Shown piece after piece: positions 3,303 through 57,657 of a stretch of DNA of 64,000 nucleotides; the first letter of the stretch is position 1, and every line of letters begins with the position of its first letter. This stretch comes from Epithemia pelagica (taxonomy: Eukaryota; Protista; Bacillariophyta): the NCBI GenBank assembly GCA_946965045.2, contig OX337235.1, positions 3,472,001-3,536,000 of the forward strand. The letters run 5' to 3'. The notes beneath the pieces were generated by a model. That model did no database searches. It was not told where the DNA came from and worked only from the letters and a program-made list of their open reading frames with translations. Made by a program: the position numbers and the translations under genes.

Positions 3303-6223
3303 AGTATTTCGTTGGGCAAGGGACTGATGTGAAAATTCTCTGGAATCTGCGACATAAAATTTTCATGAAGAAAAAGGGTAAGATCATTATCGTTAAGAGA
3401 CCAGTATCTTGACAGGATGTCTGACACGTCGTTCTTGCTCCCAGGGATGTGTTCTGCTTGAAGGGCAAACTTGTGGTGGAGAATCAAGTCGGTCAGTTTC
3501 TTCGAGACTTGGACGTGTAGTGGCTTATCGGAGCCGAAGGACGATTTGTACATCCAGCCGACGGCGGATGAGTTGTCGGAGAGACTCAGTACGGCCGAGT
3601 TTTCATCGATGTCATCGTACCAACAATCAACCCACATCGACACAACAATTGCGATGTACTCAAAAAGGTTATTGGTGCGTGTGTTGGTGGATGATGGGTC
3701 GAGTTGGGCAAGAGCTTCGAGTCTTGATTGGTCGATTTGGAATCGCCATGCTCTGCCGGATCGAACAGAGTAACCACCCATTCCTTCAGGGCATGAGTCT
3801 GCATGGAAGAGATGCGTGGGTACGCGACAAACTAGTCGGTTAAGTGAGATGCCGTCGTGGGAGTGTTGAAGGAGGGATGGCCACACTTGGAGGTCGTTGG
3901 CGATGGACTCAGGGATAGAGTACCGATAGAATGAAGGTGGTACATCTCTGTTCTGTTTTGGTCGTTTTGGATCCTTGTTGGTGTCGGGTGGTTTCGATTG
4001 CTGTTTTTGCCGAAACGCTCGTTCGATGAATGTTTGGTATTCGCGTAGACGTGACAACCAGAAGGACGCGTGTGGAATGCCTTTGGTGGCATGGAGCAAT
4101 TTTCCGATGAGACTGCGAAGGTTGTGGAAGGTTGTCCGTCGACTGGATAACATTTGAGTCACTTCGCGTGTCCAACCAATCAACTTGTCTTTTGGAAGGC
4201 GAAGGAGAAGTCGCCTTGTGTCAACAATCCACCCGAGAACTCGTTGCTCTTCGGCAGGAGCGCCTTCGGCTGCGAGTTTGTCCGCTTCTAACATGTCTTT
4301 TCTGGGGATCGGTTCGTTGTCGGCTACGGGCCTTGTCATGAGATGAACAACGAGTGGAACAATACTGGGACATCGGGCGAGATGTGGGTTGGTGGCGAGG
4401 AAGACTTGAATCATGTCATCCAGGTATGAATCATGAAATCCATGAGGACGAGTCGGGACAGAAACAGCCAATTCGCATGCTGGAGCTACGGGGATTTCTT
4501 CTGGTAGGTACTTGGGTCCTCCAATGCCTTCTTGGAGTGGTGATTGGCAATCGGTTGGTTGCCAATCGTCGAAGTCGGCGAGATCGTTGCAGAGGTCGGT
4601 TCCAATTTCGGAGACGATGGAAAATTCAGCTGGATTGGCTGAAGCTCCGAAAGTCAGGCGAAGGTTAAGGTGGGCAAAGGAATTGGAGGGATCAATGGTT
4701 ATGTTCCTTGCTGCAACGTCGCCGTCTCCGTGAACGCGACGATAAGCAGAGGACCAATCGAATTTGCTGATGACGATGCGATCATTTGGGAAGTGCCAGC
4801 GCAATGCGACAATTTGATGGATGACTCGATCTTAACAGTGGCCCATCACCAGGTCAATCAATTTGTTTTGATCGATCAAGTCGTTTGTCCAGGGGCAGAA
4901 TCCAAGGGAAAATGATTGATCGTGGGTCAGACGGTCTTTGGGAACAAGATCGCCATTGGCATCGATGCCCATTTGGTGGGCTACTCCCATTGGACTGATC
5001 CGGCTATGTTTGATCTCGGTTGCGCAGAGAAACGTGATGGGGAGGGAAAAACCCTTGGACGCGTCTTTTCGAAGGACTTTGGAAAGAGCGTCAGGGTTTT
5101 TCTTACCAGAGGCATGGTTGCCGTATTCGAGGATTGCCTCGTTCTCAGCGCGTCGGGCTGGCTCTTCTTCCTCAGCTGTGAGAGGGTATGAGACACCTTG
5201 CGTGATGTTGTGGTGGAACCGTGACCAGTATGGGTGGCCGGCTAGGAGCGGTTCCAAGATTTCCGCTGTGCGGAATTCGGATCCTGGGGTGATGACGGAA
5301 CCGGGGTGGCTGTCAATCAGTCGTTGCAGATCAAAGTCGAATCTTTCAATCAGCTGTGAGTTGAAAGTCGCATTTGATAGGACAACGTCATCGTCAATGG
5401 AGTGACGAAAGGGGGAGGGCTTGGGTGTTGGCGGTTTGTGATTGGCAATCTTGAGGATGGTGGAAAGGTCCAAAGGGTGGCACACATCTTGGAGTGGGGG
5501 AGGAGCGAGTCTTGATGGGAAAATCATGGAGATCTTGTTGGGGAGATAGCAGTGCTGGGAACTTGGGGGAACGGATTCCGTGTCGACATCATATATAGAC
5601 TCACCTAGTAATTTTAAATCCGCTTGTCGTGCTTGTTCCAATCTTTTGACGTTCCGCGCTAGGGGCTTACCCGAGAAATCGGATCCAATTATCGCTGAAG
5701 AGCTGCCTGGGAGGGTCTTCTCGATTTGTGAGGATAGATTTTCGGAATGAGAACTTGGGGGACTTGGGGGTCTTGTAGAGTTGCCAACGGTAAGAGATTC
5801 TCTTGGGAGATCCTTAGAAGTTGGTCGGGGGTGACTGGTGGCAGTCGTGGGAGTAGAGGACGGTGTATCAACGGACGACGAGATCTTGGGAATGGAATCA
5901 GACGTGATGACACATTGATTCTGAACGGATGAGATCAAGTCGGAGAGTTCTTGTTGACGGGTCTCGGGGTGTCTTGAATAATCTTGAGTGATATGATGCA
6001 CCAGAAAAGGGTTCGCAGTGCGTGGGATCTTAGGTTTGTGGTCAGATGATGGTATCGCCAAAGGTGGGAGAAAGGATGGGATGATGTTGGGTGAGGGTGG
6101 TGGGGATGGAGCAAGAGGCTTCGAAGGAAAAGAAGACTCCGCAACTATAGTATTATTATTAAGGGTGGGTTGAGAGTCGTCTTGCAACAAAGGAGAAGGA
6201 GTTGAGGATGAGGCAGCAATCAA
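2681..6223 (-). pseudogene. Reverse transcriptase/RNase H ORF with one in-frame stop (TAA at 4832-4834)
   Basis: ORFs 4832..6223 and 2681..4804 share a frame and read ...MGHC*DRVIHQIVALRWHFP. RT motifs: KFDWSSAYRR, SYLDD. RNase H motifs: ADSCPEGMGG, NLFEYIA, SDNSSAVGW, HIPGSKNDVSDILSR. Confidence 0.9.
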
Positions 6224-6235
6224 CCCGTCCTGGCG

Positions 6236-8910
6236 TCAATTGCGATTGACGTTGGCGTATGCCGACCGATAAAATTCATCCATGGCATCCTTCTTGTTGT
6301 GTTTGCTTGGGTCGTCGTGAAGAAACTTGCATTTCTTGCCTTTCTTGCAGATTCCTTTGGAGAAAAGAACGTTGCAGAAGTGTTTCTTTTTACCATTTTT
6401 CTCGATGAAGGGAATGTTGGTGAGGACCGTGGGGGGGAAGACTTGCATATAGTTCGAATCAGCCGGGAGACGCCAGTTTGATGGAGAGTCGAAAGTCGCT
6501 GCAGTCTTCTGTGGATTGGAATTGGAGGAGGAGGAGCTTTGTTGACGTTTGGAGCTTGGGGAACCGTCGTCAGAGCCTCCAGAACGTTTCTTCTGGGAGT
6601 TCTTCAATTGATTCGCTTGAAACTTAGCTTGGAGTGCCGGAGGGAGGGAGACTAAAGTCGAACCGGTCTTGACTGTGAACAAGATCCAATTTACACGCTC
6701 TTCAAAGTCCTTGAAACCCACGTCAGCAAGCAATGAAGCACTGGAAAGGGTGGAAACGAATTCTTGGACAGCCTCGTCGATGGCGAATAAGAATTGGCCG
6801 AAATAAAAATCGTTGCCCGAACTCAACTGTTTTGCCATGATTTTGGTCCTGAATTGGTGGTAGAAATTCAAGACTTTCAGAATTTGGTTGGCAATCATGG
6901 ATGATGCGCCACAAAGGCATTTGGCACAGGCCCAAAAGGATCGAAGTTGGGTTTCAAACTCGTCTGCCGTCCTCGGAAAGAAGAGATTGTGATCCGAGTA
7001 AAGTTGTTGCATTTCCTTCGATTGCTTCATGTCATTAAGATGACATAGTGAAGCATCGTGGATTTGCTGCCGAATGTTTTTGTCAAGTGTTTGGTTGGAA
7101 TCCAAGCCTGGAATGGCATAAGGATCGAAAGAAAAGGGGCTAAAGCCTCCAGGGCACGCTTCCGATTTCCAACGTAACCCAAGACGTTGGATCACTGTAC
7201 ATTGTCCGAAAAGGATGGTACAGGCATTGTCGGCTGGGTCAAAGACTTCGGCTAGGAAGGACTCGAAAAATGTGGCGGAGTTCTTCGATTTCCACACGAT
7301 CTTGATGGCTGGTAAAAGGTCTTCTGGGAGTGAAAGGGGTGAGGAGGAGATCGAACCGAGACGGAGTTGTTTTTGAGCATTCAAAGGCATGTCTCGAAAC
7401 ATGCTCTTTGACTCTGGGGCAGTGATGTCATCTTCGTTGCCATTTTTCTTCGAGGACATCTCTTTGATGCACTTCGAAAGCAGGAACATTTCTGGTGAGA
7501 CGAAATGAACGTTGCCTTCGTCATCGAGCATTCGCACACCACCACTATTCGAGGTATGAGGATTGGTCGGGGGAGATCCATATTGGGGAATCGAACAATC
7601 AACCGGCGGTTGTGACTGGAAACGAACGCTGTTGGACGAGGAACGACGCAAGGAAGGGCGTCGAGATGATGGTGGAGTCGTGTGGGTCTGGGGGGAGGAT
7701 TGGGAAAAAGGCGAGAGCGATGACTCAACAATGTGGATTTCGCCTTCAAGGGATCCTTGGGGATCGATGGAAAGACAATCTGCAACTTGGGGTTATCGCG
7801 ACGATGGAGGACGACCCAGAGAAAATGGATAATGGGTTCCTGAATCATGAGGAGGGGGTAATCCGTCGGCATTCCCTTTTGCTTGGTTTCCATAGAGCTA
7901 TCCAAAGAGGCTGTCCACCAATGGTGGAGGGCAACCTTATAAAGTCCACTGGCCAAGTCTTCAAACGGAATATTGACGTTATGATTCGATGCGTCGGTGT
8001 TATGGAGCATGAGTCCTGAGAGGCAAGGCGGCACGAGACATAGGCTTGAGCAAACAAATTCGCGATCTTTCTTCAATGAAGAGGAGGAGGCGGAAGCCAC
8101 TGAAAGATTCTTGAACTTGGATGAGTCGAAGGTCAGGTGAGGGACAGAGGACGACGGGGAGAAGTCGTCAACCTCCACAACACAATGCTCGAGGATCTCC
8201 GCAAAAGTGGGGACTTGGGAGAAAACATGGTCGCTCAAAAGTAGGGGGATGTCATCAGTGTCAAGTTGGAACGGGATGGACTCAAAAGAAATGCGATTGA
8301 GGCCATAAAATGGAATCTGGGGGTCGAAGAATGAACCACAATCCGCCGGGCAACAAAGATTGTGGAAGAGAAGGGGATTTCCGTTGCGAGACAAACCCAA
8401 CAATGCAAATGGATGATTCTTCGTCTTGGAGGTCAGCCAAACATGAAGATCGTCAGCGGAGGTGAGACGATTGAAGCTGGAGCAAACTTCCGACCAAAGG
8501 GATGGATCACGAGTCAGTGTAACGTGAAAAGGTTGGAAGAAAGAGTCGCACCAGTCGATCGGTTCGGTCTTCGCGAGTTCGGAGAAGATAAAGTCAAGGG
8601 ACTTGTCTTCAAGGGTGTGGAAGTCCTGGGTAAAGTAAAACTCGTGGCGGTAGGCGCCTGCACGAAAAGGAGAGGGGGAATTCCCTTTGGCAGGATCAGT
8701 ACCGATCGTTCCGTCGGCGAGGATAAACTCATCGTCACCATCAGCTGCGTCGGAGTCTTCAAGGAGAGAGTCGGAGCGTTTGGGAGCAGAGGGAGGCGGG
8801 GCCTGGAGTTTCTTGATCTTGTCGTTGAGGACAGAGATGGTCTTGGCTTCAGCAAAGAGTTTCTCTTGGGCTTCGGAATCAGACTCGACCGAGTAAGCAT
8901 CATCATCTTC
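6236..8910 (-). pseudogene. Gag-like ORF1 of the YR element with C-terminal CCCH zinc finger; frameshift near 7690
   Basis: C-x8-C-x5-C-x3-H (CNVLFSKGICKKGKKCKFLH) at 6317-6376. The frames of ORFs 7381..10443 and 6236..7651 are both open across a Pro/Ser-rich stretch containing a G6 run (7690-7695), so a 1-nt indel there would join them. Confidence 0.72.
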
Positions 8911-10497
8911 CTTTAGGTCAGTATCAAACTGTTCACGTTGTGCAGTAAACGACGGATCATGGGACTTTTCAACTGACAGGGGCCACACGGAAGTGCGATG
9001 GACAATCTTCCCTTTTCGTGTCAGTATTTTCGAACTCATTGCTTGACCAACCGATTTACTTGGTCCCAGCCACCTTCCGAGTTCCCTGTTCTCGAACCCG
9101 GGATTGGAATACCAGACCGGGTCATACCATCTGTGTTCAACTAGATGGGATATGTCTGGTGTATCACCGGTCAACATCTTTATAGGTGGGCCTTCATCAA
9201 ACGGTTCAGTCGCAGAAACTGTATGGGATCGTCTCTCAGCTACCAGTTGCAAACAATGATCCCATAATACAGCAGGGGCGTTTGTCCTTCTCATTTCCCT
9301 TCTATAAGCCCTCTTCAGTTCGCGGATGTTCGCTTCGGCTAGATTTTGGTTTGGTGTCCAAGCCTCTATGGGCTTAATACGACAACCAAACTTTTGGGCA
9401 GTCTTCTTGAATTTCCCACTCGTCAATTCTGGAGCATTATCTGGGACAACGCTATTGAAGATCCCGTAGTCGTTAAAGACCTTCTCTAGAGCCGTGTGAG
9501 CATCCTTCTTGCGTTCCAACGGATAAAATTGAACCCAGCCAAACTCGGTCGCAAAAATTTGACCACAAGTATTTTGGCTCAAAGATTTTGTATCCGAAAA
9601 CAGAGTATCTGTGTATACATCTGCTCGAAGCCTTCTATGCTTAAGCTGGTAAGCCGTATGCTTGAGCCTTTTACTTCCGACGCCTTGGGAAAAATCTCTT
9701 ACTCCAAGTTGCGTTGTTGCCTTGAAAGTCCTTTCCGCAACCGACAAACCGATTCCCCATCTCGAAGCTAATCCAATGGGATCTATTGTCCCCTTTCTCT
9801 TATGGCTCGTTTCGGCTACGGTTCTTGAGTTTACTCTCACCATCTTGGTCATTCTGTTGCTCAACGACCTCGAACCTTTTGTTCTGACCATGTCTTGACG
9901 AACGTCCTGTCTGAGCCTTCTCTCATCGACATCTTCTTCAGTCGAGTCATTCGGGGCCCATTCTGGATTATCGTTGGTCATCTCAATCCTGTTCGCAGGG
10001 TCAATATTCGCTATCTCCTCCCAAGACGGTTTCCTTACAGTGAAGCCACTGATTACTCCTTTCAACTCCAGAGGGATTGTCAGTGTATTTCCATTGTCGT
10101 CGTTAATGGGAACAACCAATGAATGTGGTTCACTTGTCCTTTGCTCTTGCTTGATAAACTTGAGGGGCACATCATTGACGATGATACCAGCCTCTCTCAT
10201 CTGATTTGGATTCAATAGGCTCTTCTCCATCATCGGAAGATGGAGCGCTTGGTGAAAGTACAACAGGTAAGTCTCTCCTGTCTCGGGTTCATCATATGCC
10301 AACACGCCTGTGATTACGGGAGTTTCCTTTATTTTCCCAAGCTGTGTTGAAAACCCACTCACTTCTGCCTTGTCTGTCTCATATAAAACGAGGCAATCCT
10401 TACCGAGACAACAAGTGTCAGCGTGACTGTCTAATTCGCACATAGACGTCCTAACGCTAATGTCCCTGGAGAGGACATCTATCTCGCGGACATCTCG
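8911..10497 (-). pseudogene. Copia protease + integrase, truncated and fused in frame to the YR-element gag
   Basis: N-terminal half of the 1020-aa ORF 7381..10443: DSHADT protease, LASRWGIGL pre-integrase segment, rve core, GRWLGPSKSVGQAM. Confidence 0.85.
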
Positions 10498-19215: not shown

Positions 19216-20227
19216 CTGGTGCGAGCCAAGCTGCTAGTTTCAGAGTGTGTGCATGACGATGAGTGGAACCTTTGAGGATTGGATAGTTTCTCGAACCGCC
19301 TTGTCGCTTCCCTTTTGATTGAAAAGACGCTAGTGTTGGTGTTGTTGTTGTTTTAGAGATTTGGTTGCGACCTTTCTTGACAGAAAAGTATCCAAAAGGA
19401 AATGAAGAAGGGGACGTTTGTGTGTGGTTCTGCCCAAATGTCCTCAACCTCCGTTTTCAACTGCCTCCTATAACTACACTAGTGTTTCAAATCCGTTGCA
19501 AGAACGTCTTGTTGACGGTCGACGGAGATATCACGCTAAAAAGTTTGGGTTACGCTAGGTAGATTCTACTAGAGAGGCGACAGGGTGCACGGGAGAGTTT
19601 CGGCTTCATCGGTTGAATCCTTGCATCGCTAATGAATGCGTACTACTACTAGCTCAAGGTTTGGTTCGCTTCGTGCTGCTGCCGAAGATACGTGTGAAGT
19701 GTTTACAATGTGCTCTGCCATGTCGAAAGGATCGGCGTGGAGGTACGACGATGTCTCCGTTGTCTCATGGATTCATTTATAGAGTCGTCTTGTGTTTGTC
19801 AAGATGGTACAAGGTTTGCAAAAAAATTAATGTGAGGAAAGCCGTTGTGCTTCCTTGCAAGGGTAGTCTTGATTGTATTATTTACGATTGACAACCGTTG
19901 TAGCCTCTCAATAAACTCTAAGTACTCTAGGTCTCGTCCGTTAAAAACGGTCGCAACGGATAGAAGCACGCTTTGGTATGTGACGACTGACGACATGCAG
20001 ACTGCAGAGCACTCCCTCTATTCAATCGGGGCTCACGAGAATTGCCTACCCCCAAGCCGGGGTGAGTCAGTCACGCGTGATTGGATGCACGATGTGCATC
20101 CGTATACTCACCCCCTTGGCTCGACCTGGTCGCTCTCGACATTGATACAAATCTCTAAAAGCCACATTCTACCTCCATACATCTATCACGGTGGTGGAGG
20201 TGCAGTGGTATCCAAACGACCTACAAC

Positions 20228-21043
20228 ATGTCTTCTTCTTCCCATAAACGTCAGAAGCTTTCTCAGAAGCAAGTCCGAGAAGCCTATGAAGGTCAACTGG
20301 CATCAAGCCAGTCGGTGGCATCTGCAAGAGAAGATTTTGATGCTGGCATCGCCGAAACCAACAACACTCCTGCATCCCAGCAGACCCATTCCTCCTCAAC
20401 CCCCGGTATCGCGTCGTTTCGCCCTCATTCCTCCGTTGCCGCTGGTGGTATTGACGCCATTGGTGCAAATGTCCCATACGAAACTCCTTTGGCAAACCGA
20501 CAGGCACAACAACCACAATCAAGAAATCTCATCAGGTCTGAACCATCTACATTTCTCGACAGCGCTGCGGCCAGCTCTTTATCCACTCTTCCCTCCGATC
20601 GCACTCAACCCACTCGTCGCGTCCAAATGGTTACCTTTCCTCCGTTGTCGTCCCATGACCCATGCCGTCTTCCATCCTCAACCAATGAAGTAGATGGAGA
20701 ACCACAGATTCAAAACCAAGCTCCAAGGGGTGTATCATCTGCTTCATTCAATCTGTGGCATCGACGAGATTCTTTCGGCCACATTGAATTTGGGACTCAA
20801 TCCTCCCCTCCCAAGCCTCTCTCCAATCTACGAATGTCAGTTGATTCAACCACCAATGAAGAACCACAGGGAAGCAACAACCCAACAACAGCCTCCTCCA
20901 GGACACAGTACACTGTTCCTACTGCTGTTGCTCCACCGGACTCAAATTTCCCTTCTGCTCCTGCTACAGACGACCCCTCTCCCAACCAAGTTCAGGAGCC
21001 GATAACCACCAGCAAGTTGCTTGCCAAGCTGGATCGTTGGTGA
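20228..21043 (+). pseudogene. 5' remnant of the left-hand ORF of the TIR element (possible transposase N-terminus)
   Basis: Starts MSSSSHKRQKLSQK. A homologous start MSSSSHKRRRTSQK occurs at the same distance from the left end of the 49334 element. Rest is low complexity and no catalytic motif is visible. Confidence 0.5.
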
Positions 21044-21650
21044 TTTTTTGAGCAGAGGTAAATATAAAGATTCTTCTCTTTGCTGGGTCGTTGTTACGCA
21101 ATTTCTCCAAGTGGTTGCGAAGAATGTTGTTGAGTCTCGCAGAGCGAAGAACATCAAGGTTGAAAACTTGGAGTCGGTTGGATAGGTGGTTTGTCAGCGA
21201 GGTATGCTTTAACTTGGAGGTTTGGTCAGCTGCCAAACTCAACAAAGGGACTATTGTAATGGTAATCCCTCCACACAAAATACTGCTAATGTCACGGACT
21301 GCCGATTTACCACCACCGGTGGAACGAACAAGAAGCAGGGGGCGTAGGATGGACGGTGTCGTTGAAGGGCCAGTGTGGCGTGGGAGAACTTCTTTACTGG
21401 CATCAATCTGCCATAAACAGGCGGTCTTGCCATGCCAATCTGTAAAGATGGCCTCAATGGCCTGTTGTAGAAGGTCAGGACCATGGGCGGGATGCTTGGT
21501 ATGGTGGCGGTGAGAATGAGACGACGGAAGGGATGTACTAGAGCTGGTTGCGGATGCAGTCGATGAAGCTTCACCTTCCTTGTTACTGTCCCGAAATGTG
21601 GTGTCTTGCTGGTTGTCCATGCCTGTGAATGGGCAAAATGGAGGCAACAC
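20964..21650 (-). pseudogene. RecQ-like SF2 helicase N-terminal fragment
   Basis: Walker A LLVRSTGGGKS (codons about 21303-21320), motif Ia TIVPLLSLAADQ, FIFTSAQKI resembling the RecQ YvsPEkl segment. Stops before the DEAH box at the inferred deletion junction (~21000-21015). Confidence 0.82.
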
Positions 21651-22497
21651 TGAGTACGCAGAAGTGTCCTAGGTAGTATGGGACAGCTTACAATGGCTTG
21701 GGTGCAGTTGGAGAACCTTCAGGGCGGATGCAATCGACCTCACTTGTTTGGCACCGTGGTGGATGCGTTGAGGTAAAATGCGATTTGTATCAATGTCGGA
21801 AAATCGCCAATTTTAGGTGGTCGAGCCAAGGGGGTGAGTATACGGATGTACCTTTAGGTACGACCTATGTGCGACCTGGACTCACCCCTGCTTGGGGGTA
21901 GAGAATTGCCCCGGGGTCACGAATCAGTGTGTCTATCGAAGCTATGCCTTTCCATGTGATCGGATGAAACTGGAGTCTATCGTACTCCTAAGTCCTAAGG
22001 CTGTTCCTTTAGCTTTCCGAAACGAAAACTGAATCGTGACGTCACATCATATTCTTGTTTTGGCGCGAAATGCCGTCCTTGCGCTCAACGAAACCAAAGT
22101 ATGCTGAAACAATGCAAACGGACAGAGGACGCACCGACCGTTGGAGTTGAACGCCTGCATGCCATGACGAACGCCTGTCTGACTGATTCGAAACTGTAGG
22201 CAAATGGTACACTAGCTAGCAATGGGAACTAATATCCCTAATGTGATTTCAACTTTCGTAAGAGCACTAAGGTTTACGAAAGTTGGTACCAACTTTCGGG
22301 GCAATTAGAGATACTTGAAGCAGTGGCGGGCGATATTCAAAAAAGATAGGGTTGGGGATATGTCTGGCCGCCTCACCAATATGGAGGGGAAATAATGGCG
22401 AATAACGATGTTAGTCTAAGCGTATCCGTTCATACACTACCATCCTGGTGTGTACAGATTGGTTCGACGCTCGGTCCGCGTCGCACGTCGCACTGGG

Positions 22498-22865
22498 ACT
22501 AACTCCATACCAGACTGTGAAGGTAGTTCGTCTCACATTTTTATACTACAGTAGGAATTTTTTGTACGACCGGGAAGGAGTCGCGCGGGTTCCCTCTCGT
22601 GTGTGACACTTGTGCGACACTTGTGTGACACTTTCTGACATGGCTTCTAGGAATTTCTCACTACCTACACAGCTTGATAGGGAGTAAGTTTACTACTTCC
22701 CTGTGTCTGGCCGTCGGGCGCGCCCGGATTGTCGGGAGAATGACTCGACGGGCAATTGTCTTTTCGGGCGTGCGCCCTCCTCGACCATTGCCCTCCTCGT
22801 CATTCTACCCTCCGCGCCGGGCGGTCCCTCCTTGAAAGGACTCGACACCGGGAAGTATTAATACT
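22498..22865 (+). repeat. Unclassified ~375-bp interspersed repeat, copy A (two small internal deletions)
   Basis: ACTAACTCCATACCAGACTGTG...CCGGGAAGTATTAATACT, matching the copies at 30924, 31299 and 59767. Confidence 0.9.
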
Positions 22866-23073
22866 GATGTAGTACTACATCCGTTTCATTACCGCTACGT
22901 TAGTGGGCTGTCGAGGACGACGCCTTCAACTTCAACGACTATGTCCTATCGAGCCTCTATGAGACCTAGCTTGAGGATTTCGTCTACCTAGGAGTAGGGG
23001 TATATTAGGACGATCATATCCTCTATATCATTATAACAAGCCATTCGATGGAATCTCCCCATGACAAGTATTC

Positions 23074-38500: not shown

Positions 38501-39729
38501 CCTCCTTGGTGTGATCGATCTACGATCTATACATACACAAGACAGGGCTTTTCTCCTTCTTCTTCTATCCGCTATGTACTGGTCAGAAGATTTTGTGGAT
38601 CTACGTCTATCCTACGTAGCCCAGTACCAGAAGCCTGGTCATTTCTGGTCAATTTGGTCATTCCTGGTCAATTTTAGACGAGGCATGGCGTGCGCGGGCA
38701 CGGACACTCAGGCATGAAAGTGACTGTCGCACGACAACGTGAGCCGATCAGACCATCTCGCCGAGCCCCACCCCATAAACAAGAACCCAAAATGCTATCT
38801 CTATCTCTCGATTCTCAATTGTCTCATTTTTTCCGAAGAACAAAGAAAGCGAACCCTGGGGATGGATCCAATACATGCAACAATCAAACAAAGCTGTCAA
38901 CACTACTTTATGAGGTAGAAAATGAGGACATCCTGTTACAAAGGATCCTGCATCCTGCATGGAAAAGCGAAAACTCTTGACCATCTATTCTACTTGGGAT
39001 TGTAGCCTCTCGGCTTGGCTACCTACAAAAGATGGGCTTAGGTAGATCGTCACAGTTCATGCAATAAAATATGGATCCATCCATGTCCACAACAAGCTGG
39101 AATGTGTGAATTGGAAACTGGTAGCTTTTCCGTTTCCAGTTTCCAATCAATAGATATACTCCTAGCTAATGCTACTGGTCGTCTCTAGCTAGGAGTACCT
39201 AGCTAGCTTATCCTTTACCTAGCTAGATGAGCCTAGTATAGGTAGCGATCCTGAGTCCCGTATCGTAGTACGGGAGTATACATACTCGTACTCGTAGGGT
39301 TCAGTCAGAGTCAGAATGGTTGGGACGGGATCCCAATCCCATCGGGCGTGGGGTGGGGGGTGCTGATTTTAGATCGGCTTAAATAAAATCCCACCTACGC
39401 GGAAAATGTCGGCGCGCTCTATAATGGCCTCTCCGACTCTAACCTAAAAAGTACAAAAAATTGACCAGAATTGACCAGCGCCAGAATAGGATCTTCTTTC
39501 TGCACAACCAGGGCGACTCGTGTGCGTCCACAACTAATACAAGGAGCGTAACCAGACAGAGGGAACTGCAAAAGTCTTCTTTGGTTGAAGAACATTTTTT
39601 TTTCGCCCTGTTTTTGATCTTACGTCATGGTCGGTGGACATGGAACGGACGACGCAAAGACGTAATGGAGTCGTGGTTACGACAGCGCCCGCGTGCACCG
39701 TGAGCTTTGCCTTTGCAGGAATCTCGATG

Positions 39730-39834
39730 TACCCCCCAAGCAGTGGTGAGTGAGTCCGGCGTGATGCGCTTGTATTCCGATACAAACAGTGTATTCTATC
39801 ACTAATCCTCATGACTCACCCCCGCTGGGGGATA
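39730..39834. mobile_element. 105-bp miniature (MITE-like) member of the AcademH-like family
   Basis: TACCCCCCAAGCAGTGGTGAGT ... ACTCACCCCCGCTGGGGGATA. 10-bp TSD AATCTCGATG at 39720-39729 and 39835-39844. Shares TCACTAATCCTCATGACTCACCCCCGCT with the right end of the 49334-59530 element. Confidence 0.85.
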
Positions 39835-39890
39835 AATCTCGATGCTCCGTACTTTATTATCAAAACCTGGTGAATGAATCGTCTAATAGC

Positions 39891-48750: not shown

Positions 48751-50050
48751 ACTCGCGTTGGACGGTTGTCGCCGGTGTAGAGTGTAGATCTCTTTTCTCT
48801 TTGTTGGTTGGAGCTTGGAGTTCTATTTGTCTATAGTACCTCCGGCTGAGCGGTTGTGTTGTGGTCGATTCTGGGAGAACGCGCCCTTGTCGCTTGTCTG
48901 GCTAGCTAGCCACCTCTGTTGCGTGCAGGGTGTGGAAGTCAATGCACAGGACCTGCCAACTTAACTTTACCCCTTAAAGTCAAGTCACAAAAGTTGACTG
49001 ACTTAACTTCATCCACCAAAATCACGGCCAACCATCAGGCAACTTGACTTTATACATAAAGTCATCCAACCAGATCCTCATGACTTGACTTCTAGAGTTA
49101 AAGTCAGAGACTCAAATACACTGACTTGACTTTAAGTATAGTTGACTTGACTTAAAGTCAATGACTTCATGACTTAAAGTCAACTTCACCCCATACTACG
49201 CACAGAAACATTGGTATTTGTTACTGCGGACACGGAGATATACGAGGGAAGTTGTGAAGTCACTGTCATATAGAAGTTGACTTGACTTGGGACATAAAGT
49301 CACTAGCAGTAATATGGTTGACTTGACTTTAAGTACCCCCCAGCGGGGGTGAGTAGTCGGGTCGCATATGTGTCGTGCTTTTGGTGTGCAAACTCTTACT
49401 CACCCCCAAGGCGCGACCTCTGCGCTCCCAGTACTGACACAAACCTCCAAACGACCACCTGCATTCATCGCGGCAATGGAGATATGGAGCCGTGCTTACG
49501 GACCCTACAATGTCTTCTTCGTCACACAAACGCCGTCGCACTTCCCAGAAATCCATTAGAAAGCTACATGCTTCCCGCGGCGTGGCCATTCCTCCTGCAT
49601 CCGAAGCAAAAGGAGAATCAAGCGTCCTCATCACAGAACCCACCACAAACGCGTTGGAGGGAGATGAGGGCGGGATGAGGGCGAGATGAGACAATGGACT
49701 TTCACCATGTCGAAGAGTCATGGTGGATGAGGTATAGTGCTTTCTATATGGGGCTGGATTTTTGCATTACACGACAGGTGACAATACGGTTCCTAACGAT
49801 CAATCGTGTTCTCATGTCTTTTCCATCTGATTCTTGATCGGATGAAGCCTTGTTCAGTGTTCTCATGATCCGATTGAAAACAAGAGAGGAACTGGAAAAG
49901 GAGGAGGTAGAAAATTCGACGGATTATGAAGCTCATTTGGTCAATCGGATGCCGATGGCATGTCTCAGAGAGAACGACGTGGGCTCGAGGCATAATGAAA
50001 CAAGAACGACATGCAGTTCCACAACAGCAACAACGACCTCGGGAGGAAGG

Positions 50051-50833
50051 TGTTAGAATTCTCACCGTCTATGGTGGTTAGATTCTACATCTCATCGATT
50101 CCCCATGTCACATAGCCTCGTGCTATCGCATCATGCCCTCTAGCTTCGAGCTATGTTTCCTAGCTTCGCGCTATATCGACCTATATTTCTTCGCAAATCA
50201 TGAAAAGTGAGAATAGATTGACGAACTCACTCTCAAGACTAAACTGGGTCGTGCGGTATTACAACGGACATAAATTTGGCCGTTGCTCGGACATTATACT
50301 AACGCCCTAAGCGTACGCGCCCGAAATCATCGAGCGCGCCCAAGCGACATCCGAGCGCTATCGGCATCTATCCGATCCAACGGTCTAAGTATCCCAAGCA
50401 CGACACACGATCACGCGAGACCATATTTCCATTCCCACAATCTCCAAATTGTCAACAAGCTGCGCGCCATGAAAACAACTATGCCAACCCAAAGCAAGAG
50501 CTGTTGACCCTGTATATGTTATCCGCCCACATATACATGTCATATACATCACATGAATCAACTCCAACTATTCCAAACCTGTTGCCGCCAAGAACCTATG
50601 ACACATGACCCTTGGCAGGACCGAACATTTCACGTAGACCTATCGTAGTAATCAACACACAATCTAACAATATCACCATTTATCACATCCTCTTTTGTGT
50701 CCCGACTATCCTTCTGATAGACTTCGACTTGCTTGCTTCTCTGACCCTGAGAAGCTTGTATCGGTTGGTGACCTACCTGATTGTCTGCTCTACCGAGCAT
50801 CAATGTCCCTACGATTCAGAAAGAATTGTAACA
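50051..50833 (+). repeat. 5' LTR
   Basis: TGTTAGAATTC...GAATTGTAACA; no difference from 57652-58434 seen by eye. Confidence 0.96.
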
Positions 50834-50851
50834 GATTAACAGTCTCAAAGC
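50834..50851 (+). promoter_or_regulatory. Putative primer-binding site complementary to the anticodon arm of tRNA-Asn(GTT)
   Basis: GATTAACAGTCTCAAAGC directly follows the LTR. Its reverse complement contains GA-CTGTTAA-TC, an Asn anticodon loop with flanking stem bases. Confidence 0.5.
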
Positions 50852-50869
50852 TTATTTCCTTGTGGTTTC

Positions 50870-51649
50870 ATGGATACTAACGAGATTATCACTCCTGTAC
50901 GACAGATCTATCGAGCCAACCTGCATCCCGGGCAGCCCGATACCCTGGTGCAGCAGGAACTGGTGCCGACGCCGAAGGCAGCCAACACATCGGTCAACAT
51001 CTCCGTCGACAGTTCCAACAGCAACCCATTCGAGACTCCAACCCAGCCTCACGCTCCAATCCCTGCGCCGTTGCTTCGGCCCCCGAGTCCGCCTCGTCGG
51101 CTCGTCCCTTCTCGATCCCGTCGTACCACCCGGTTGATTGCTGACCATATCAAGTACTTCCGCCAACCAACTTGTTCGACCTTCGATCCCGAGATCATCC
51201 GTGGGGAGACCCAGATCGAACGCCAGTTCCAATCGGTGACCCACATCGTCGACCAAGAAGACATTGACCGTCTGAACGACCAACTTCATCGTTCTCCGAG
51301 GCGTCGCCTCATCTTTGCCGCCCTCTCGGGCAACCCCATCCGTACTGTCCACCTCCGCTTCCTAACCTTCGAGCGCCCAACTGGATACTACAATACCATC
51401 CACGTCGTGAACGCGACGACTTGCCCTCTGCCTCCTAACGTTGTACGCCTAGATAACTACGTTGCCTACATCCACGAGGTCCATACCATCGAGGACCATC
51501 GTGCAACTATCTACCCTTTGCGTGCCGAGGTCGAGAACCACCTGGCTGAAGGTGATTCCCCTTCTTCTGTTGCTTGTGCTGCCCCATCTGAGCCTGGAAG
51601 CGACTCTGATCATTCGGAAGAGGGTGAGGATTCGGAGACCGAAGCTTAA
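50870..51649 (+). CDS. Extra ORF (259 aa) between the 5' LTR and gag-pol; function unknown
   Basis: Intact ATG-initiated sense ORF inside the element; P/R-rich N-part, acidic C-tail. Confidence 0.7.
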   Translation: MDTNEIITPVRQIYRANLHPGQPDTLVQQELVPTPKAANTSVNISVDSSNSNPFETPTQPHAPIPAPLLRPPSPPRRLVPSRSRRTTRLIADHIKYFRQPTCSTFDPEIIRGETQIERQFQSVTHIVDQEDIDRLNDQLHRSPRRRLIFAALSGNPIRTVHLRFLTFERPTGYYNTIHVVNATTCPLPPNVVRLDNYVAYIHEVHTIEDHRATIYPLRAEVENHLAEGDSPSSVACAAPSEPGSDSDHSEEGEDSETEA

Positions 51650-51969
51650 TTACTCATAGTTAACTCCCGTCCTCTCAAAACCTTTCCAAGACTTAAACTC
51701 AACGCACATCCGGGTACCCTTGGTCGCACAACACGCCACACATTCCCGTCAAATCGCGAAAATTCGGCGAAAATTTGTTGAAACTCGGCGAAAATTTGTC
51801 GAAATCAACGGAAATTTCCAGGAGTCGCACATCACAACACACATCCGGGTATCACATACGTGGTACATACGTGGCACACGTGGTACATCCGGGTTCACAT
51901 CACATCACACATTAAATAAACCACATCACACCGCACATTAAATAAACATCGAACCAACCAAATAACACC

Positions 51970-54900
51970 ATGGATCCTCAATCACCCAAGACACCTACGA
52001 CTCCTAAGGGAGAAGATAACCAAGACAATGTCTCGGACACAGACCTATTCGACCACATCATATTTACTGTCTGCCAATTCTTCACCAAAGAAAGGGCCGA
52101 CTACTTAATGAAGTGGATGAAATACCATGGTTTTGAGAACATTACCCATGTTATCTCGTATATGCAAACTAATACCGAGGAATCCATGAAGGAACTGACA
52201 CAATACAAGGTCAACAAACAGACACATGATCTACAAGGCCCCACAAGACAGCAGATCAAGCTCTTGGCTTATTGGGCCACATACAAGACCAATGAAATTC
52301 AAGACGAGCTATCCAATAGCGACTGGATGAACCTAACGAGGAAAGAGTTCAACACTTGGAGGATCAACACAGATTTCTCTAAGGGACCACCTAGTCAAGT
52401 CCCAGTCTCGCCAATGAAGTCACCGTCATCTGTGAAATCTGTCAGCACAGTTACTGCCGCATCCCAATCTCAACAAGACCTTACAGCATTCAGAAAGGGA
52501 ACTAAGCGCGACGCAACTGCATACGAGGTATTCAAGGATGAACGATACTACGATTCATTCTGGCGTGTATTCAAGACTACAGCTAAGGCTCAAGGCCTAT
52601 CCAACGTCCTGAATTTCAAATACACACCACCCCATGATGATGAGTATGCCGAAGAACTTTTTCAAGAGCAACAAGTATTTCTTTACTCCGTTCTTGTCCG
52701 TATCATTCAGACTGACCAAGGTCGAGCCTATGTACGTGAACATGAACATGATGAAGATGCGCGTGCCGTATTGCAGAAGTTACGCTCTTTGCATACCGAA
52801 TCCGACCTAGCAAAGCGAGAAGTCCTCCGCTTAACCAACTACATTTCCAATCTACGTCTTGACGACACATGGCGCGGAACAACACGTCAATTTCTTCTAC
52901 ACTTTCAAGAGCAGCTACGTTTGCTAGACAATTTAGTGACATTGTCTGATCGCATCCCTGATCATACCAGGATGACCTTCCTCATGCAAGCTGTAGAAAA
53001 GGTACCTGATCTCCGCCGAGTCAAGATCTTGGATAATGTGGTGAACACCAAATCCGGTGCAAAATCCCTTTGCTATCAATCATACTTCCGTCTCCTTCTA
53101 GACGCAGCTTATGACCATGATCAAGCAACCCAGTCATCTGTTCATAGTCGCCGTCGACATGTCAAACAACATGAATCACTATATGGCCAAGATACAGATG
53201 CTGACATAACCTCACAAGATGATATGGAGTATCATGTCCACAACACCAAAGCGACATCTGAATCTCCATCCTCTTCGTCCAAGGTTAGTCTACCGCGTGA
53301 CCTATGGTTCAAACTTTCTGAAGAAGATCGCAAGTTGATCATTGAGTATAACAAGATGATTCAAGCACCTTCATCAACAACACCGAGGACAGTGCAAACA
53401 CATGCCCTCGACATTGATCCGGAACCTGATCCTGACCCCAACCAAGTTGCATCTGATGACGACTCACCTGGCGTAGTCCCTGAGCATTCAGATGATTCAG
53501 ATCCGGTTACACAATTTATCAACCAAGCCATGACGACTGATATCAATCACCCGGCAACTGACCTGACTAGTGTTCTTTCTAACGCCAAGTCCAAGACAAG
53601 CAAGAAGGTTACTTTCAAAGCCAACATGCATAAACAAGCAGGACATGTCCCACGCTATCTGTTTTCCAGGAAATCTACTTTACCAGGGAATCAATTGATT
53701 GACCGTGGTGCTAATGGAGGACTTGCTGGTTCTGACATGCGCATCCTTTCTAAGACTGGCCGTCATATCACTATTGTGGGTATTGATAACCATGAACTTA
53801 CTGGGCTTCCTGTCGTCACATGTGCCGCAAAGTTTGAGACCAATGATGGACCTATTGTCGGCATCTTCAATGAATATGCTTATTATGGGAAGGGCTTATC
53901 TATCCATGCTCCCGGTCAATTCGAGCATTTCGGACTTGCTGTTGATGAACGATCTGTTAAAGTTGATGGTAAACAACGCATCACTACACTTGATGGTCGT
54001 GCCATACCCCTTCACATCAAGGATGGGTTAGCCTACATCCACTCCTTGGGTATCCCCAGCGACGATGACATGGATACCTTACCTCAGATCATCTTCACGT
54101 CACCCGACACATGGGATCCTGGTGTTCTGGACCATTCGTATTCTCCCACACCCTCTGACAATGATCCTGATTGGAAACACGTCAAGACTGATGGTAGTAT
54201 GTCGAACCATCCATATGACAACTATGGGGAGTACACTGATCGTGTTGTTTGTAACCTCAATCTCCTTTTGGATCTCCCATATGATCATGGACCTGACGAC
54301 GCACCCTTCTTTTCTATCTATGCTGACGCAGAAGGTAATGATCCTACACTTCATGCCTCTGTCCACCGTCGTTACCAGGAAGCGTATGACTGGAAGAAGT
54401 TTCGTCCATTCTTTGGTTGGCAATCTGAAGATGTTATTGCCGATACGTTCAAGCACACTACACGTAATGGTAGCATTACTTTTGACCACGACACCCTCAA
54501 GAAACATTTCAAGGCTCGCAATCCGGTCCTTAATATACCTCGACGTCATGAACCCGTTGCTACTGACTCGGTTTTCTCCGACACCCCTGCTGTTGACCAT
54601 GGCGGTAAAGTCGCACAAATCTTTGTTGGTCGAGATACTCTGGTTACTGATATCTATGGGATCAAGTCGACCAAACAGTTTGTCAATACTCTCCAGGATA
54701 ACATCCGGTTTCGTGGTGCCATGGAGACCCTTATCAGTGATGGTGGTTCATCTCTCATCTCTCAAAAGGTCAAAGACATTCTTCGCACTTTGCTTATTGG
54801 GGAGTATCGATCTGAACCTTATCATCAACACCAGAATAAGGCTGAAAACCGTTATCAGACCGTTAAACGTATGACCAACGCTCTCATGAATGCCACTGGT

Positions 54901-57657
54901 TGCCCTGCCAACACCTGGCTTCTTTGCCTTGAGTATGTCTGTGACTTATTGAACCATACGTCATCACCCACCCACTCCGGTCGCACTCCTCTTGAGGCTC
55001 TCTCCGGTCGCCCACCCGACATTACTCCTCTCTTGTTCTTTCCTTTCTGGGATGAGGTTTACTACCGTGTCGACCCCGCTGAACCCAATTCCGGTTCATA
55101 TCCATCTTCTTCTGATGAGAAACTTGGCCACTGGGTTGGTTTTGCTCACAACGTTGGTGATTCTTTTACTTGGAAAATTCTCACCCAGGATAACCAGATA
55201 ATCTATCGTTCTGCCGTTCGCCGTGTTGAATCCACTACACCTAACCTACGTGTGGATCGACCTTCAGGGGAGGATTCGTCTGAGAAGGATGACAATGATA
55301 AGCAAGCTGACACTGTCTTCATTCGCAGTGATAGTGAAGATCCATCCAAACCAATGCCCACGATCGATTTTGACGACATGATAGGACGCACATTCCTATG
55401 CGACACAGAAGAAAATGGGGAGCGACACCGTGCACGTGTCATCAAACGAGTCATTGATCTTAATGAAGAAGCAACGAAACAGGAAGAACGTGTCAAGTAC
55501 ATTTACCGAAAGACAAATTCTGATGTTGATGAGATGATATCCTATAATCAACTCATGGAGTATATCGAACGAGATAACCAAGCTCAAACCTCTGGAGATA
55601 ATCTTTTCAGGTTCAGGGATGTCATTGCCCATCAAGGCCCACTGAACACAACTGATCCAGATTACAAGGGGAGCAAATATAATTTGCTTGTTGATTGGGA
55701 AACTGGGGAGACTACCTATGAACCTTTATCACTCATCGCCAATGATGATCCGATCACTGTAGCAATTTATGGAAAGAAACATGGTTTACTCAACGAACCT
55801 GGATGGAAGCATTTGAAACGTTATGTCAAAACAAGCAAACGTCTCATTCGAGCAGCCAAACAGTCAAGGATTAAACAAGTTCACCATTCCGTCAAGTATA
55901 AGTTTGGATTTCAAGTACCACGCAATTATGAGGAAGCTGTTGCTCTTGATAAACAACATGGCAACACAAAGTGGCAGGATGCAACAGAATTAGAATTGTC
56001 ACAGATCCAGTCCTACAAGACATTCAAGGATTTTGGGAAAGCCATCTTCATTAAAGGGAAAGTATCCAATGCACCTGAAGGATATCATAAGATACGTGTG
56101 CATCTTGTCTTTGACGTAAAACATGATGGACGACATAAAGCAAGACTTGTCGCAGATGGACATCTCACAAAAGAACCTGTTGAGACAATCTATTCAGGTG
56201 TTGTTTCCATTCGCAACCTCCGCATTGCCTTATTCCTGGGTACTTTGAATGACTTGGAAATATGGGGAGCAGATATTGGAAATGCATATCTGGAAGCCTT
56301 GACAGGGGAGAAAATTTTCATTGTCGCAGGACCTGAATTCAAGGAATTAGAAGGTCACATCCTGATTATATACAAGGCACTTTATGGATTGAAGTCATCA
56401 GGCGCACGCTGGCATGATGTCTTATTCGATGTTTTGACAGACATGGGCTTTTCACCAAGCAAAGCAGATCCGGATATCTGGATGAGGAAAGCACCTGGAG
56501 AAGACTGTTACGAATACATTGCCGTATACGTTGATGACTTAGCCATTATTTCTACTGATCCTGGGAATATCTGCAAGATCCTGAAGGAGAAATACAACTT
56601 CAAACTCAAAGGAGATGGACCTATTGATTTCCATTTGGGATGTTGTTACACCAAGGATTCTGATGGAACATTCGTAGCAGATCCAAGACGCTACATTGGT
56701 AAGATGATGGACACTTTCGAACGAATCTTCAAGGAGAAACCCAAGAAAGCCAAAACACCTCTTATTGGTGGAGACCATCCTGAATTGGATGATTCTGAGC
56801 TCCTTGATGAAGAAGGTACTAGCCATTTCCAAACTCTGATTGGACAACTCCAATGGGTGATCACTATTGGTCGTTTCGACGTCTTCACCGCTACAATGAC
56901 GCTATCACGCTTTCGTGCTGCTCCGAGGAAAGGACATCTTGATAGAGCCAAGCGTATCTATGGATACCTTGCACATCTCCCAGAAGGCGCAATCAGATTT
57001 AGGATTGGAGAGCCTGATTATTCAAGTCTTCCTACCCAAGAATTTGATTGGACTCGCACTGTCTATTCGAATGCAAGTGAACGTATTCCTGAAGACTGCC
57101 CAACACCTCTTGGCCGCTATGTTACCACAACTCATTATGTTGATGCCAATCTCATGCATGACATAGTCACTGGTAAATCCGTCACTGCTGTTCTACATTT
57201 GTTGAACGGAACACCTATTGACTGGTACAGCAAGAGACAGAGCACGGTGGAAACTGCTACCTATGGATCCGAGTTTGTGGCTGCAAGGACAGCAATAGAT
57301 CAGATTACAGAATTACGACATTCTCTCCGCTACCTTGGAGTACCTATCCGAGAGCGAAGTTACTTGTACGGAGATAACAGATCTGTTGTGCTCAATGCAA
57401 CCGTTCCTCACTCCATACTATCCAAGAGACACCATCTTCTGTCATACCACCGAGTTCGTGAAGCCATCGCAGCAAAGTATGTTGCATTCTACTGGAAAGA
57501 TGGAAAGACCAACCCTGCCGATATCCTTAGCAAACATTGGGATTTCGTATCTATTTGGCCCATGCTCAAGCCATTGTTGTTTTGGAAAGGAGAAGTTCAA
57601 GATCTCAACAAATCCAATGATGACAAGGCTGAAACGACGAGTTGTGGGGAGTGTTAG
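51970..57657 (+). CDS. Gag-Pol polyprotein (gag, protease, integrase, RT, RNase H), 1895 aa
   Basis: Protease LIDRGANGG; integrase TDSVFSD/ISDGG/NKAENRY; RT KARLVADG, ADIGNAYL, ALYGLKSSG, YVDD; RNase H YVDAN, TYGSEF, GDNRSV, NPADILSK. Copia domain order. Confidence 0.97.
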   Translation: MDPQSPKTPTTPKGEDNQDNVSDTDLFDHIIFTVCQFFTKERADYLMKWMKYHGFENITHVISYMQTNTEESMKELTQYKVNKQTHDLQGPTRQQIKLLAYWATYKTNEIQDELSNSDWMNLTRKEFNTWRINTDFSKGPPSQVPVSPMKSPSSVKSVSTVTAASQSQQDLTAFRKGTKRDATAYEVFKDERYYDSFWRVFKTTAKAQGLSNVLNFKYTPPHDDEYAEELFQEQQVFLYSVLVRIIQTDQGRAYVREHEHDEDARAVLQKLRSLHTESDLAKREVLRLTNYISNLRLDDTWRGTTRQFLLHFQEQLRLLDNLVTLSDRIPDHTRMTFLMQAVEKVPDLRRVKILDNVVNTKSGAKSLCYQSYFRLLLDAAYDHDQATQSSVHSRRRHVKQHESLYGQDTDADITSQDDMEYHVHNTKATSESPSSSSKVSLPRDLWFKLSEEDRKLIIEYNKMIQAPSSTTPRTVQTHALDIDPEPDPDPNQVASDDDSPGVVPEHSDDSDPVTQFINQAMTTDINHPATDLTSVLSNAKSKTSKKVTFKANMHKQAGHVPRYLFSRKSTLPGNQLIDRGANGGLAGSDMRILSKTGRHITIVGIDNHELTGLPVVTCAAKFETNDGPIVGIFNEYAYYGKGLSIHAPGQFEHFGLAVDERSVKVDGKQRITTLDGRAIPLHIKDGLAYIHSLGIPSDDDMDTLPQIIFTSPDTWDPGVLDHSYSPTPSDNDPDWKHVKTDGSMSNHPYDNYGEYTDRVVCNLNLLLDLPYDHGPDDAPFFSIYADAEGNDPTLHASVHRRYQEAYDWKKFRPFFGWQSEDVIADTFKHTTRNGSITFDHDTLKKHFKARNPVLNIPRRHEPVATDSVFSDTPAVDHGGKVAQIFVGRDTLVTDIYGIKSTKQFVNTLQDNIRFRGAMETLISDGGSSLISQKVKDILRTLLIGEYRSEPYHQHQNKAENRYQTVKRMTNALMNATGCPANTWLLCLEYVCDLLNHTSSPTHSGRTPLEALSGRPPDITPLLFFPFWDEVYYRVDPAEPNSGSYPSSSDEKLGHWVGFAHNVGDSFTWKILTQDNQIIYRSAVRRVESTTPNLRVDRPSGEDSSEKDDNDKQADTVFIRSDSEDPSKPMPTIDFDDMIGRTFLCDTEENGERHRARVIKRVIDLNEEATKQEERVKYIYRKTNSDVDEMISYNQLMEYIERDNQAQTSGDNLFRFRDVIAHQGPLNTTDPDYKGSKYNLLVDWETGETTYEPLSLIANDDPITVAIYGKKHGLLNEPGWKHLKRYVKTSKRLIRAAKQSRIKQVHHSVKYKFGFQVPRNYEEAVALDKQHGNTKWQDATELELSQIQSYKTFKDFGKAIFIKGKVSNAPEGYHKIRVHLVFDVKHDGRHKARLVADGHLTKEPVETIYSGVVSIRNLRIALFLGTLNDLEIWGADIGNAYLEALTGEKIFIVAGPEFKELEGHILIIYKALYGLKSSGARWHDVLFDVLTDMGFSPSKADPDIWMRKAPGEDCYEYIAVYVDDLAIISTDPGNICKILKEKYNFKLKGDGPIDFHLGCCYTKDSDGTFVADPRRYIGKMMDTFERIFKEKPKKAKTPLIGGDHPELDDSELLDEEGTSHFQTLIGQLQWVITIGRFDVFTATMTLSRFRAAPRKGHLDRAKRIYGYLAHLPEGAIRFRIGEPDYSSLPTQEFDWTRTVYSNASERIPEDCPTPLGRYVTTTHYVDANLMHDIVTGKSVTAVLHLLNGTPIDWYSKRQSTVETATYGSEFVAARTAIDQITELRHSLRYLGVPIRERSYLYGDNRSVVLNATVPHSILSKRHHLLSYHRVREAIAAKYVAFYWKDGKTNPADILSKHWDFVSIWPMLKPLLFWKGEVQDLNKSNDDKAETTSCGEC

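Follow-up and report, generated by a model that had tools for sequence, protein, structure and literature searches.

Within a 64,000-nucleotide stretch of the genome of the diatom Epithemia pelagica that was analysed as a whole (contig OX337235.1, positions 3,472,001 to 3,536,000 of the forward strand; hereafter the window), there is a 1.85-kb copy of a DNA transposon with terminal inverted repeats (TIRs), which is bounded by a target-site duplication (TSD) and holds the remnants of two convergent open reading frames (ORFs), one of a transposase and one of a RecQ-like helicase. We refer to this copy as element A, and its features in window coordinates are:

20047-21900: element A, 1.85 kb, copy of a TIR DNA transposon, lying within 20037-21910
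20037-20046: left copy of the TSD of A, GAGAATTGCC, 10 bp, detected by the repeat finder
21901-21910: right copy of the TSD of A, GAGAATTGCC, completing a perfect 10-bp direct repeat
20047-20153, + strand: left terminal region, 22-bp TIR plus two more inverted blocks
21782-21900, - strand: right terminal region, TIR at 21879-21900 plus two more inverted blocks
20040-20068/21879-21907: inverted block 1, from the repeat finder
20094-20126/21819-21851: inverted block 2, 97% complementary
20137-20153/21782-21798: inverted block 3, 100% complementary
20228-21043, + strand: left ORF, 271 aa, convergent with the right ORF
20964-21650, - strand: right ORF, 228 aa, as called mechanically
20228-21010, + strand: transposase remnant, codons 1-261, N-terminus MSSSSHKRQK
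21015-21620, - strand: helicase remnant, codons 1-202, with motifs 0, I, Ia and Ib
21011-21014: internal deletion junction, between the ends of transposase and helicase homology

A sequence-only reading of this DNA had described TA-terminated inverted ends with three inverted blocks over about 110 bp, a perfect 10-bp TSD, and two convergent ORF remnants of which the right-hand one has RecQ motifs I and Ia, and each of these observations was borne out. The TIRs of A, at 20047-20068 on the forward and 21879-21900 on the reverse strand, carry TA at the outer end and differ at 1 of 22 bases, while the repeat finder recovered three inverted blocks that cover ~107 bp of either end, together with GAGAATTGCC on both sides of the element. 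Within the left end there is a G/C hairpin motif, and GGGGTGAGT recurs there internally in inverted orientation; as single-stranded DNA this end folded better than 200 of 200 shuffles (z -3.75). An Rfam scan of the whole window gave no matches. When the right ORF was compared with the PDB, all 23 matches at an expect value (E) of ≤0.06 were RecQ-family helicases, the best being E. coli RecQ (E 2.6e-5) with GGGKS and PL.SL..DQ aligned, the alignments covering Walker A and motif Ia, and a weak DEAD match was its sole Pfam result. The true start of the helicase remnant is probably the ATG at 21620.

The window corresponds to ctg1303l of ENA assembly ERZ21939226, and it was in this same assembly that full-length copies of the element were recovered. 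An exhaustive HMMER search with the helicase remnant returned 311 relatives, including a 725-aa protein at 57% identity, the gene for which sits on a 451-kb contig of ERZ21939226. Around this gene we found a 7830-bp element (L001), bounded by the same termini and by a 10-bp target duplication without mismatch, in which the helicase gene runs inward from one end and a large gene runs inward from the other, its protein beginning MSSKKSSSSHKR and its main ORF spanning 1476 aa. Searching with this large protein gave 14 clusters with 52 member sequences, all from ENA, and six of the contigs were opened; all six came from ERZ21939226 and yielded six more full-length copies of 7526-7832 bp, in each of which a candidate transposase (1488-1746 aa) and a helicase (588-729 aa) are encoded convergently. 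The seven intact two-gene copies, in the coordinates of their own loci, are:

L001, 9821-17650: full-length copy, TSD of 10 bp
L003, 5822-13626: full-length copy, TSD of 9 bp
L004, 5829-13637 (ctg1227l): full-length copy, 7809 bp, TSD of 9 bp
L005, 5829-13637 (ctg1351l): full-length copy, 7809 bp, TSD of 9 bp
L006, 5047-12862: full-length copy with the helicase in two pieces, TSD of 10 bp
L007, 5858-13383: full-length copy, TSD of 9 bp
L008, 5240-13071: full-length copy, TSD of 10 bp

Two further family members, B and C, lie in the window itself and are described below. All 11 copies have TIRs of 21-22 bp beginning with TA, and the ten target duplications of these eleven copies, when tabulated, divided equally between 10 bp (A, C, L001, L006 and L008) and 9 bp (B, L003, L007 and both sites of the L004/L005 pair). 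Single-strand folding beat every shuffle for both ends of A and for the left end of L004, and the ends of B and L001 formed the short terminal G/C hairpin alone. The 7809-bp elements L004 and L005 are 100% identical at different loci with intact ORFs, and these two identical copies indicate that the family has been mobile recently. The 9-bp duplications of this pair are exchanged, in that the left flank of L004, AATGGAGCG, equals the right flank of L005 and the left flank of L005, AGTGACCGG, equals the right flank of L004; this would fit either ectopic recombination between young copies (a translocation or inversion) or a switch of assembler path inside the repeat.

Comparison with L004 and L005 accounts for the structure of A. 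The 261 residues of its left ORF are 63% identical to residues 1-242 of the 1732-aa L004/L005 transposase (P0154), and from codon 11 its right ORF provides 202 residues that are 79% identical to residues 1-202 of the 698-aa L004 helicase. By blastx the transposase homology ends at 21010 and the helicase homology at 21015, in agreement with the deletion junction that had been placed near 21000-21015, and past 21010 the left ORF continues out of frame to a stop at 21043. At the DNA level, the left 793 bp and right 885 bp of A are 77% and 83% identical to L004/L005, respectively, with the ~6.1 kb between them absent. Missing from A, in parent numbering, are the transposase from about residue 243 and the helicase from about residue 203, so that it lacks the transposase catalytic core as well as helicase motif II and the entire C-terminal helicase domain; the earlier remark that no transposase catalytic residues are visible was right, as the 261 codons kept lie upstream of the core. 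Given these protein and DNA alignments and the ~6.1-kb gap in them, A is an internally deleted, non-autonomous copy derived from a subfamily related to L004/L005. Its non-autonomous status, already proposed from the sequence, is now shown by the presence of the intact two-gene parent type in the same assembly, and A itself is an ordinary non-autonomous copy. The remnant ORF of A is carried by one contig only of ERZ21939226, and in Logan contigs the depth of its interior is about that of the flanks while the depth at its termini is 10-100 times greater; A is therefore a derivative that occurs once or a few times, from a family whose ends are numerous in this genome. One public run, X4, covers 20474-21679 inside A at low depth and without the immediate flanks of A, and among its contigs is one of 465 nt that crosses the deletion junction without any difference. 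Should X4 be an RNA run, transcription of the remnant in A would follow.

The helicase gene lies inside the TIRs in 7 of 7 full-length copies and encodes 590-730 aa; the full-length protein retains motif II (DECH) and motif VI, and its core is followed by a Cys-rich stretch. Its nearest family is RecQ, both in the PDB and in NCBIfam, although the element helicases score 61-73 bits against RecQ-family cut-offs of 219.8-640, and at 61-72 bits they fall far short of the TIGR00614 cut-off of 219.8 for cellular RecQ. Pairwise identities of helicase and transposase rise and fall in step, r being 0.99 when all pairs are taken and 0.72 among the diatom copies alone; the pairs are not independent, and r here describes the pattern and is no test of it. 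The closest pairs are the same for both proteins (L001-L006, L004-L008 and L001-L007). From its constant presence, its co-divergence with the transposase and scores far under the cellular RecQ cut-offs, the helicase is, as judged by sequence, a gene of the element and not a captured host fragment. The sequence-only reading had named a one-off captured RecQ fragment as the finding that would overturn it, and what we found instead was a helicase in every full-length copy that diverges along with its transposase. Relatives of the helicase were present in the transcriptome of the diatom Attheya sp. CCMP212 and in one MMETSP transcript, which points to expression in marine protists. Among 20 sampled helicase relatives none was a fungal or animal genome record, their sources being metagenomes, metatranscriptomes and protist transcriptomes.

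For the transposase, a Pfam scan of six full-length proteins gave DUF6589 alone, at 24-31 bits (gathering score 27), with no match to MULE (Mutator-like element; PF10551), hAT, KDZ or other known transposase families; the comparison of the non-helicase ORF with known families, which had been proposed as a check, returned DUF6589 only and no recognised DDE family. An AlphaFold model built from 8 diatom sequences was unusable, with a mean predicted local distance difference test score (pLDDT) of 42. A profile search then added a second clade, from metagenomes, at 24-29% transposase identity, and the resulting 32-sequence alignment gave a model with pLDDT 82 and a predicted template modelling (TM) score (pTM) of 0.80. 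In AFDB this model matched, at E 4e-13 to 1e-8, representatives of clusters that carry the name DUF6589; in the structural alignments the diatom transposases share 9-14% identity with these animal and fungal models. The model also matched ESM Atlas clusters from Cnidaria and Mucoromycota at TM-scores of 0.57-0.62. The nearest bacterial folds were IS66 and ISKra4 transposases, with ISL3 and MULE also among the cluster matches. Foldseek of the model against the PDB gave nothing significant (best E 0.2). When solved structures were compared with VIA-align, Hermes (hAT; Z 8.8) and the P-element transposase (Z 8.6) came out on top, and 295-358 residues were aligned; the next matches were retroviral integrases, Tn5, ISCth4, Sleeping Beauty, RAG1, Mos1, IstA and TnsB. 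Of the 50 solved matches listed, the majority are DDE transposases or integrases of retroviruses, and an RNase-H-like core is present in almost all. The consistency of this list supports a transposase modelled as an RNase-H-like (DDE) core with a large helical insertion. Acidic residues kept in both clades are, in core numbering, D121 (FDN, on a strand), D318-E319, D364 (GDGLS, after a strand), E466 and D614/E618. No XPG domain was found among the Pfam families reported for the matches and clusters, where structure matches are known by their AFDB names and Atlas clusters by their families only.

The two other family members of the window came from a search with a shorter terminal pattern, which located six ends that pair into A, B and C:

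39730-39834, + strand: family member C, 105-bp miniature consisting of two termini only
39720-39729 and 39835-39844: TSD of C, AATCTCGATG, 10 bp
49334-59530, + strand: family member B, non-autonomous, ~1.8 kb made up of 49334-50050 plus 58440-59530
49325-49333 and 59531-59539: TSD of B, GACTTTAAG, 9 bp

Over 55 bp, the right ends of C and of the full-length copy L007 share 96% identity. B is cut in two by a nested retrotransposon with long terminal repeats (LTRs) and is not full-length. What A and B have in common is only ~200 bp on the left, in which the MSSSSHKR ORF starts, and, on the right, ~150 bp; their interiors are unrelated, and B retains only ~24 transposase codons. Since these interiors are unrelated, the evidence of the window alone would still accommodate a captured helicase fragment.

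Placement of the family then depends on how its traits compare with those of described groups. According to PMC10045372, which cites Kojima 2020, AcademH elements carry their own helicase and make 9- or 10-bp TSDs, while AcademX elements carry a nuclease and make TSDs of 3-4 bp; the reported AcademH hosts are animals together with Basidiomycota, Ascomycota and Mucoromycota (PMC10799480), and Academ is most abundant in Pucciniomycotina (PMC5751038). The traits that the sequence-only reading had given for AcademH (a helicase, 9-10-bp TSDs, fungal and animal hosts) agree with PMC10045372 and PMC10799480. The diatom family has the superfamily 2 (SF2) helicase, the 9/10-bp TSDs, the TIRs and, in the predicted model, the RNase-H-like fold. 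Clusters with DUF6589 occur most often in Basidiomycota, Mucoromycota, Cnidaria and Chordata, and an 'Academ-H' annotation was found in one sea anemone genome paper. PMC9587614 names both Academ and diatoms but draws no link between them. On architecture, TSD length and the phyletic pattern of the transposase family, the diatom elements thus probably form an AcademH-type family within the Academ superfamily, and the original AcademH-like call is supported by the element's own helicase, the 9/10-bp duplications and a DDE-fold family whose hosts match those of AcademH. Several points weigh against this assignment or its extensions. The DUF6589 matches are marginal, and some copies fall under the gathering score or have no match; the VIA-align Z scores of 8.8 and 8.6 are just above the level that is common for unrelated models with this tool; the DDE triad has alternative candidates, namely D121, then D318 or D364, then E466 or E618; and the equation of DUF6589 with the Academ transposase rests on architecture, TSD length and host range and not on reference Academ sequences. 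As regards recent movement of A in particular, the Logan contigs of public runs contained no empty-site joint 20046/21911, no excision footprint and no spanning contig.

These points bear chiefly on one other explanation, in which the family is a separate helicase-carrying TIR superfamily whose DUF6589-type transposase is unrelated or only remotely related to Academ and for which 'AcademH' is a look-alike label. Such a reading gains from an AcademH label that is drawn from shared traits, from the marginal Pfam scores, and from a 2017 survey in which the RNase H-like domain of Academ matched no Pfam family (PMC5751038), though that survey predates DUF6589. We consider it unlikely, since the combination of a helicase with 9-10-bp TSDs is given only for AcademH in the literature examined (PMC10799480 and PMC10045372), DUF6589 has the host range that is published for AcademH, and the sea anemone genome with 'Academ-H' belongs to Cnidaria, where DUF6589 clusters are common. 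Far less probable is that A is a Mutator-like (Pack-MULE-type) or other known DDE element with a captured fragment of host RecQ. MULEs make 9-10-bp TSDs too, the interiors of A and B are unrelated, and a MULE transposase gene is present in the L001 locus, albeit outside the element; against this, the full-length transposases have no Pfam match to MULE, hAT, KDZ or another transposase family, the helicase lies within the TIRs of 7/7 copies, diverges in step with the transposase and is remote from cellular RecQ (70 bits versus 219.8), and the helicase piece of A is 79% identical to the element helicase and begins at its own start codon. Capture by a MULE or Pack-MULE is therefore refuted by the full-length copies and by the constancy and co-divergence of their helicase.

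That the inverted ends and the 10-bp repeat of A are chance features around two unrelated short ORFs has a negligible probability: beyond the general caution that short repeats arise by chance nothing speaks for it, and it is refuted by a terminal 22-mer that has five matches in the window at up to three mismatches, compared with none in 100 shuffles, and by ten further copies with the same ends and 9-10-bp duplications. Two other element types were also tried and rejected. KDZ/Zisupton elements have a KDZ transposase domain and an 8-bp TSD, and here there is no KDZ Pfam match and the TSDs are 9-10 bp. Helitrons encode a Rep/HUH-Pif1 helicase protein and are not known to have TIRs or a TSD; here both are present and the helicase is RecQ-like, not Pif1-like.

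Within the AcademH-type assignment, the age and breadth of the family can be considered from its diversity. Transposase identities of 51-59% divide the diatom copies into at least six subfamilies, which suggests long residence in the diatom genome and not one recent arrival. More distant relatives, at 24-29% transposase identity on 6-9-kb metagenome contigs, keep the pairing of transposase and helicase, with the genes convergent in L009, L010 and L012 and in tandem in L011, where both lie on one strand with the helicase gene second (L011:1419-6598, a marine metagenome by its record name). L009 and L010 have a motif of the CCCCCAGCGGGG type near both ends, compared with 0.01 expected by chance, and L011 has at 56-111 a palindrome of the CAGCCCTGAGCAGGGC type that resembles the L009/L010 termini; TSDs were not readable at L009 and L010, and L011 and L012 showed no clear termini. 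The transposase-helicase module thus appears to be old. Taken further, the diatom copies and their marine relatives may represent a deep, undescribed protist branch of helicase-carrying Academ-type transposons, the first in stramenopiles, in which G/C-hairpin termini are conserved at ~24% transposase identity, the helicase has co-evolved throughout and transposition is taking place now, a proposal that we favour by a small margin over its negation.

A plausible course of events for A begins with a single deletion of ~6 kb that would have removed its interior, as is typical of abortive gap repair after excision. A would then be unable to move alone but could be mobilised by transposase from intact relatives, and the TIR of the L004/L005 family is identical to the right TIR of A. 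The transposase would bind at the conserved termini, which are of the G/C hairpin type, and would cut the target at staggered positions 9 or 10 bp apart, and the helicase, as its fixed partner, may unwind or remodel the structured ends or a repair intermediate.

Other elements occur beside the family, both in the window and around the full-length copies. The retrotransposon nested in B is:

50051-58434, + strand: Ty1/copia LTR retrotransposon inserted in B, outside the TIR family

This young element has a 5-bp TSD (GAAGG). Its two LTRs, of 783 bp each, match at 100% identity, and its 1895-aa gag-pol ORF, at 51970-57657 and with an RVT_2 domain, is intact. In L001 a similar RVT_2 ORF of 1875 aa (3449-9076) immediately precedes the full-length element, and a MULE transposase gene is found in the same locus from 22027 onward. 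Likewise, a piggyBac-type transposase gene (PF13843, 785 aa) at L005:3141-5498 directly adjoins the full-length element, so that the neighbourhoods of these elements are transposon-rich. At 22350-22885 of the window there is also a very high-copy repeat, unrelated to the family and with no Rfam match, for which the summed Logan contig depth is 8,000-120,000 as against ~140 in neighbouring unique sequence.

What the locus contributes is a probable AcademH-type family in a new host group, of a kind that is itself already known from animals and fungi. AcademH is among the least studied groups of DNA transposons and has been described from animals and fungi only, and an active, diversified diatom family with marine relatives would extend it to another eukaryotic supergroup; a wider host range would in turn argue for great age or for horizontal spread. 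The co-occurrence in one genome of intact identical copies, deletion derivatives and a 105-bp miniature suggests cis-requirements of ~50 bp per end, and the same copies provide a natural donor/helper pair with which to ask what the helicase contributes to cut-and-paste transposition. If the family does belong to a deep protist branch, it could serve as a native diatom transposon tool and as a system for studying a transposon-borne RecQ-like helicase.

Compared with cellular RecQ proteins (E. coli RecQ, RECQ1 and BLM), the element helicase shares motifs 0, I, Ia, II (DECH) and VI and the Cys-rich stretch after the core, but it is transposon-encoded, co-diverges with the transposase and scores ~70 bits where the family cut-off is 219.8. 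TSDs are 8 bp in hAT elements and 7-8 bp in P elements. The hAT transposase Hermes and the P-element transposase are the best solved matches to the model and have, as predicted here, an RNase-H-like core with a large helical insertion, and a D-x-H / H-x3-H stretch after a core strand of the model recalls the C/DxxH signature (PMC9587614); however, there is no sequence-level match and hAT and P elements have no helicase. MULE/MuDR elements have in common with the diatom family the 9-10-bp TSDs, the TIRs and the frequency of deleted or cargo-bearing non-autonomous copies, but the transposase here lacks PF10551 and MULEs are without a helicase partner. AcademX presumably shares the transposase superfamily, but is described in PMC10045372 as having 3-4-bp TSDs and an XPG nuclease fusion, whereas here the TSDs are 9-10 bp, no XPG was found and a helicase is present instead. 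With AcademH the family shares TIR-based cut-and-paste organisation, an SF2 helicase beside a large DDE transposase, 9/10-bp TSDs, and DUF6589, which occurs in the fungal and animal phyla reported for AcademH; it differs in its host, here a diatom (a stramenopile) with relatives in marine metagenomes where the described hosts are animals and fungi, and the conserved G/C hairpin motif at the termini is a feature of the family described here.

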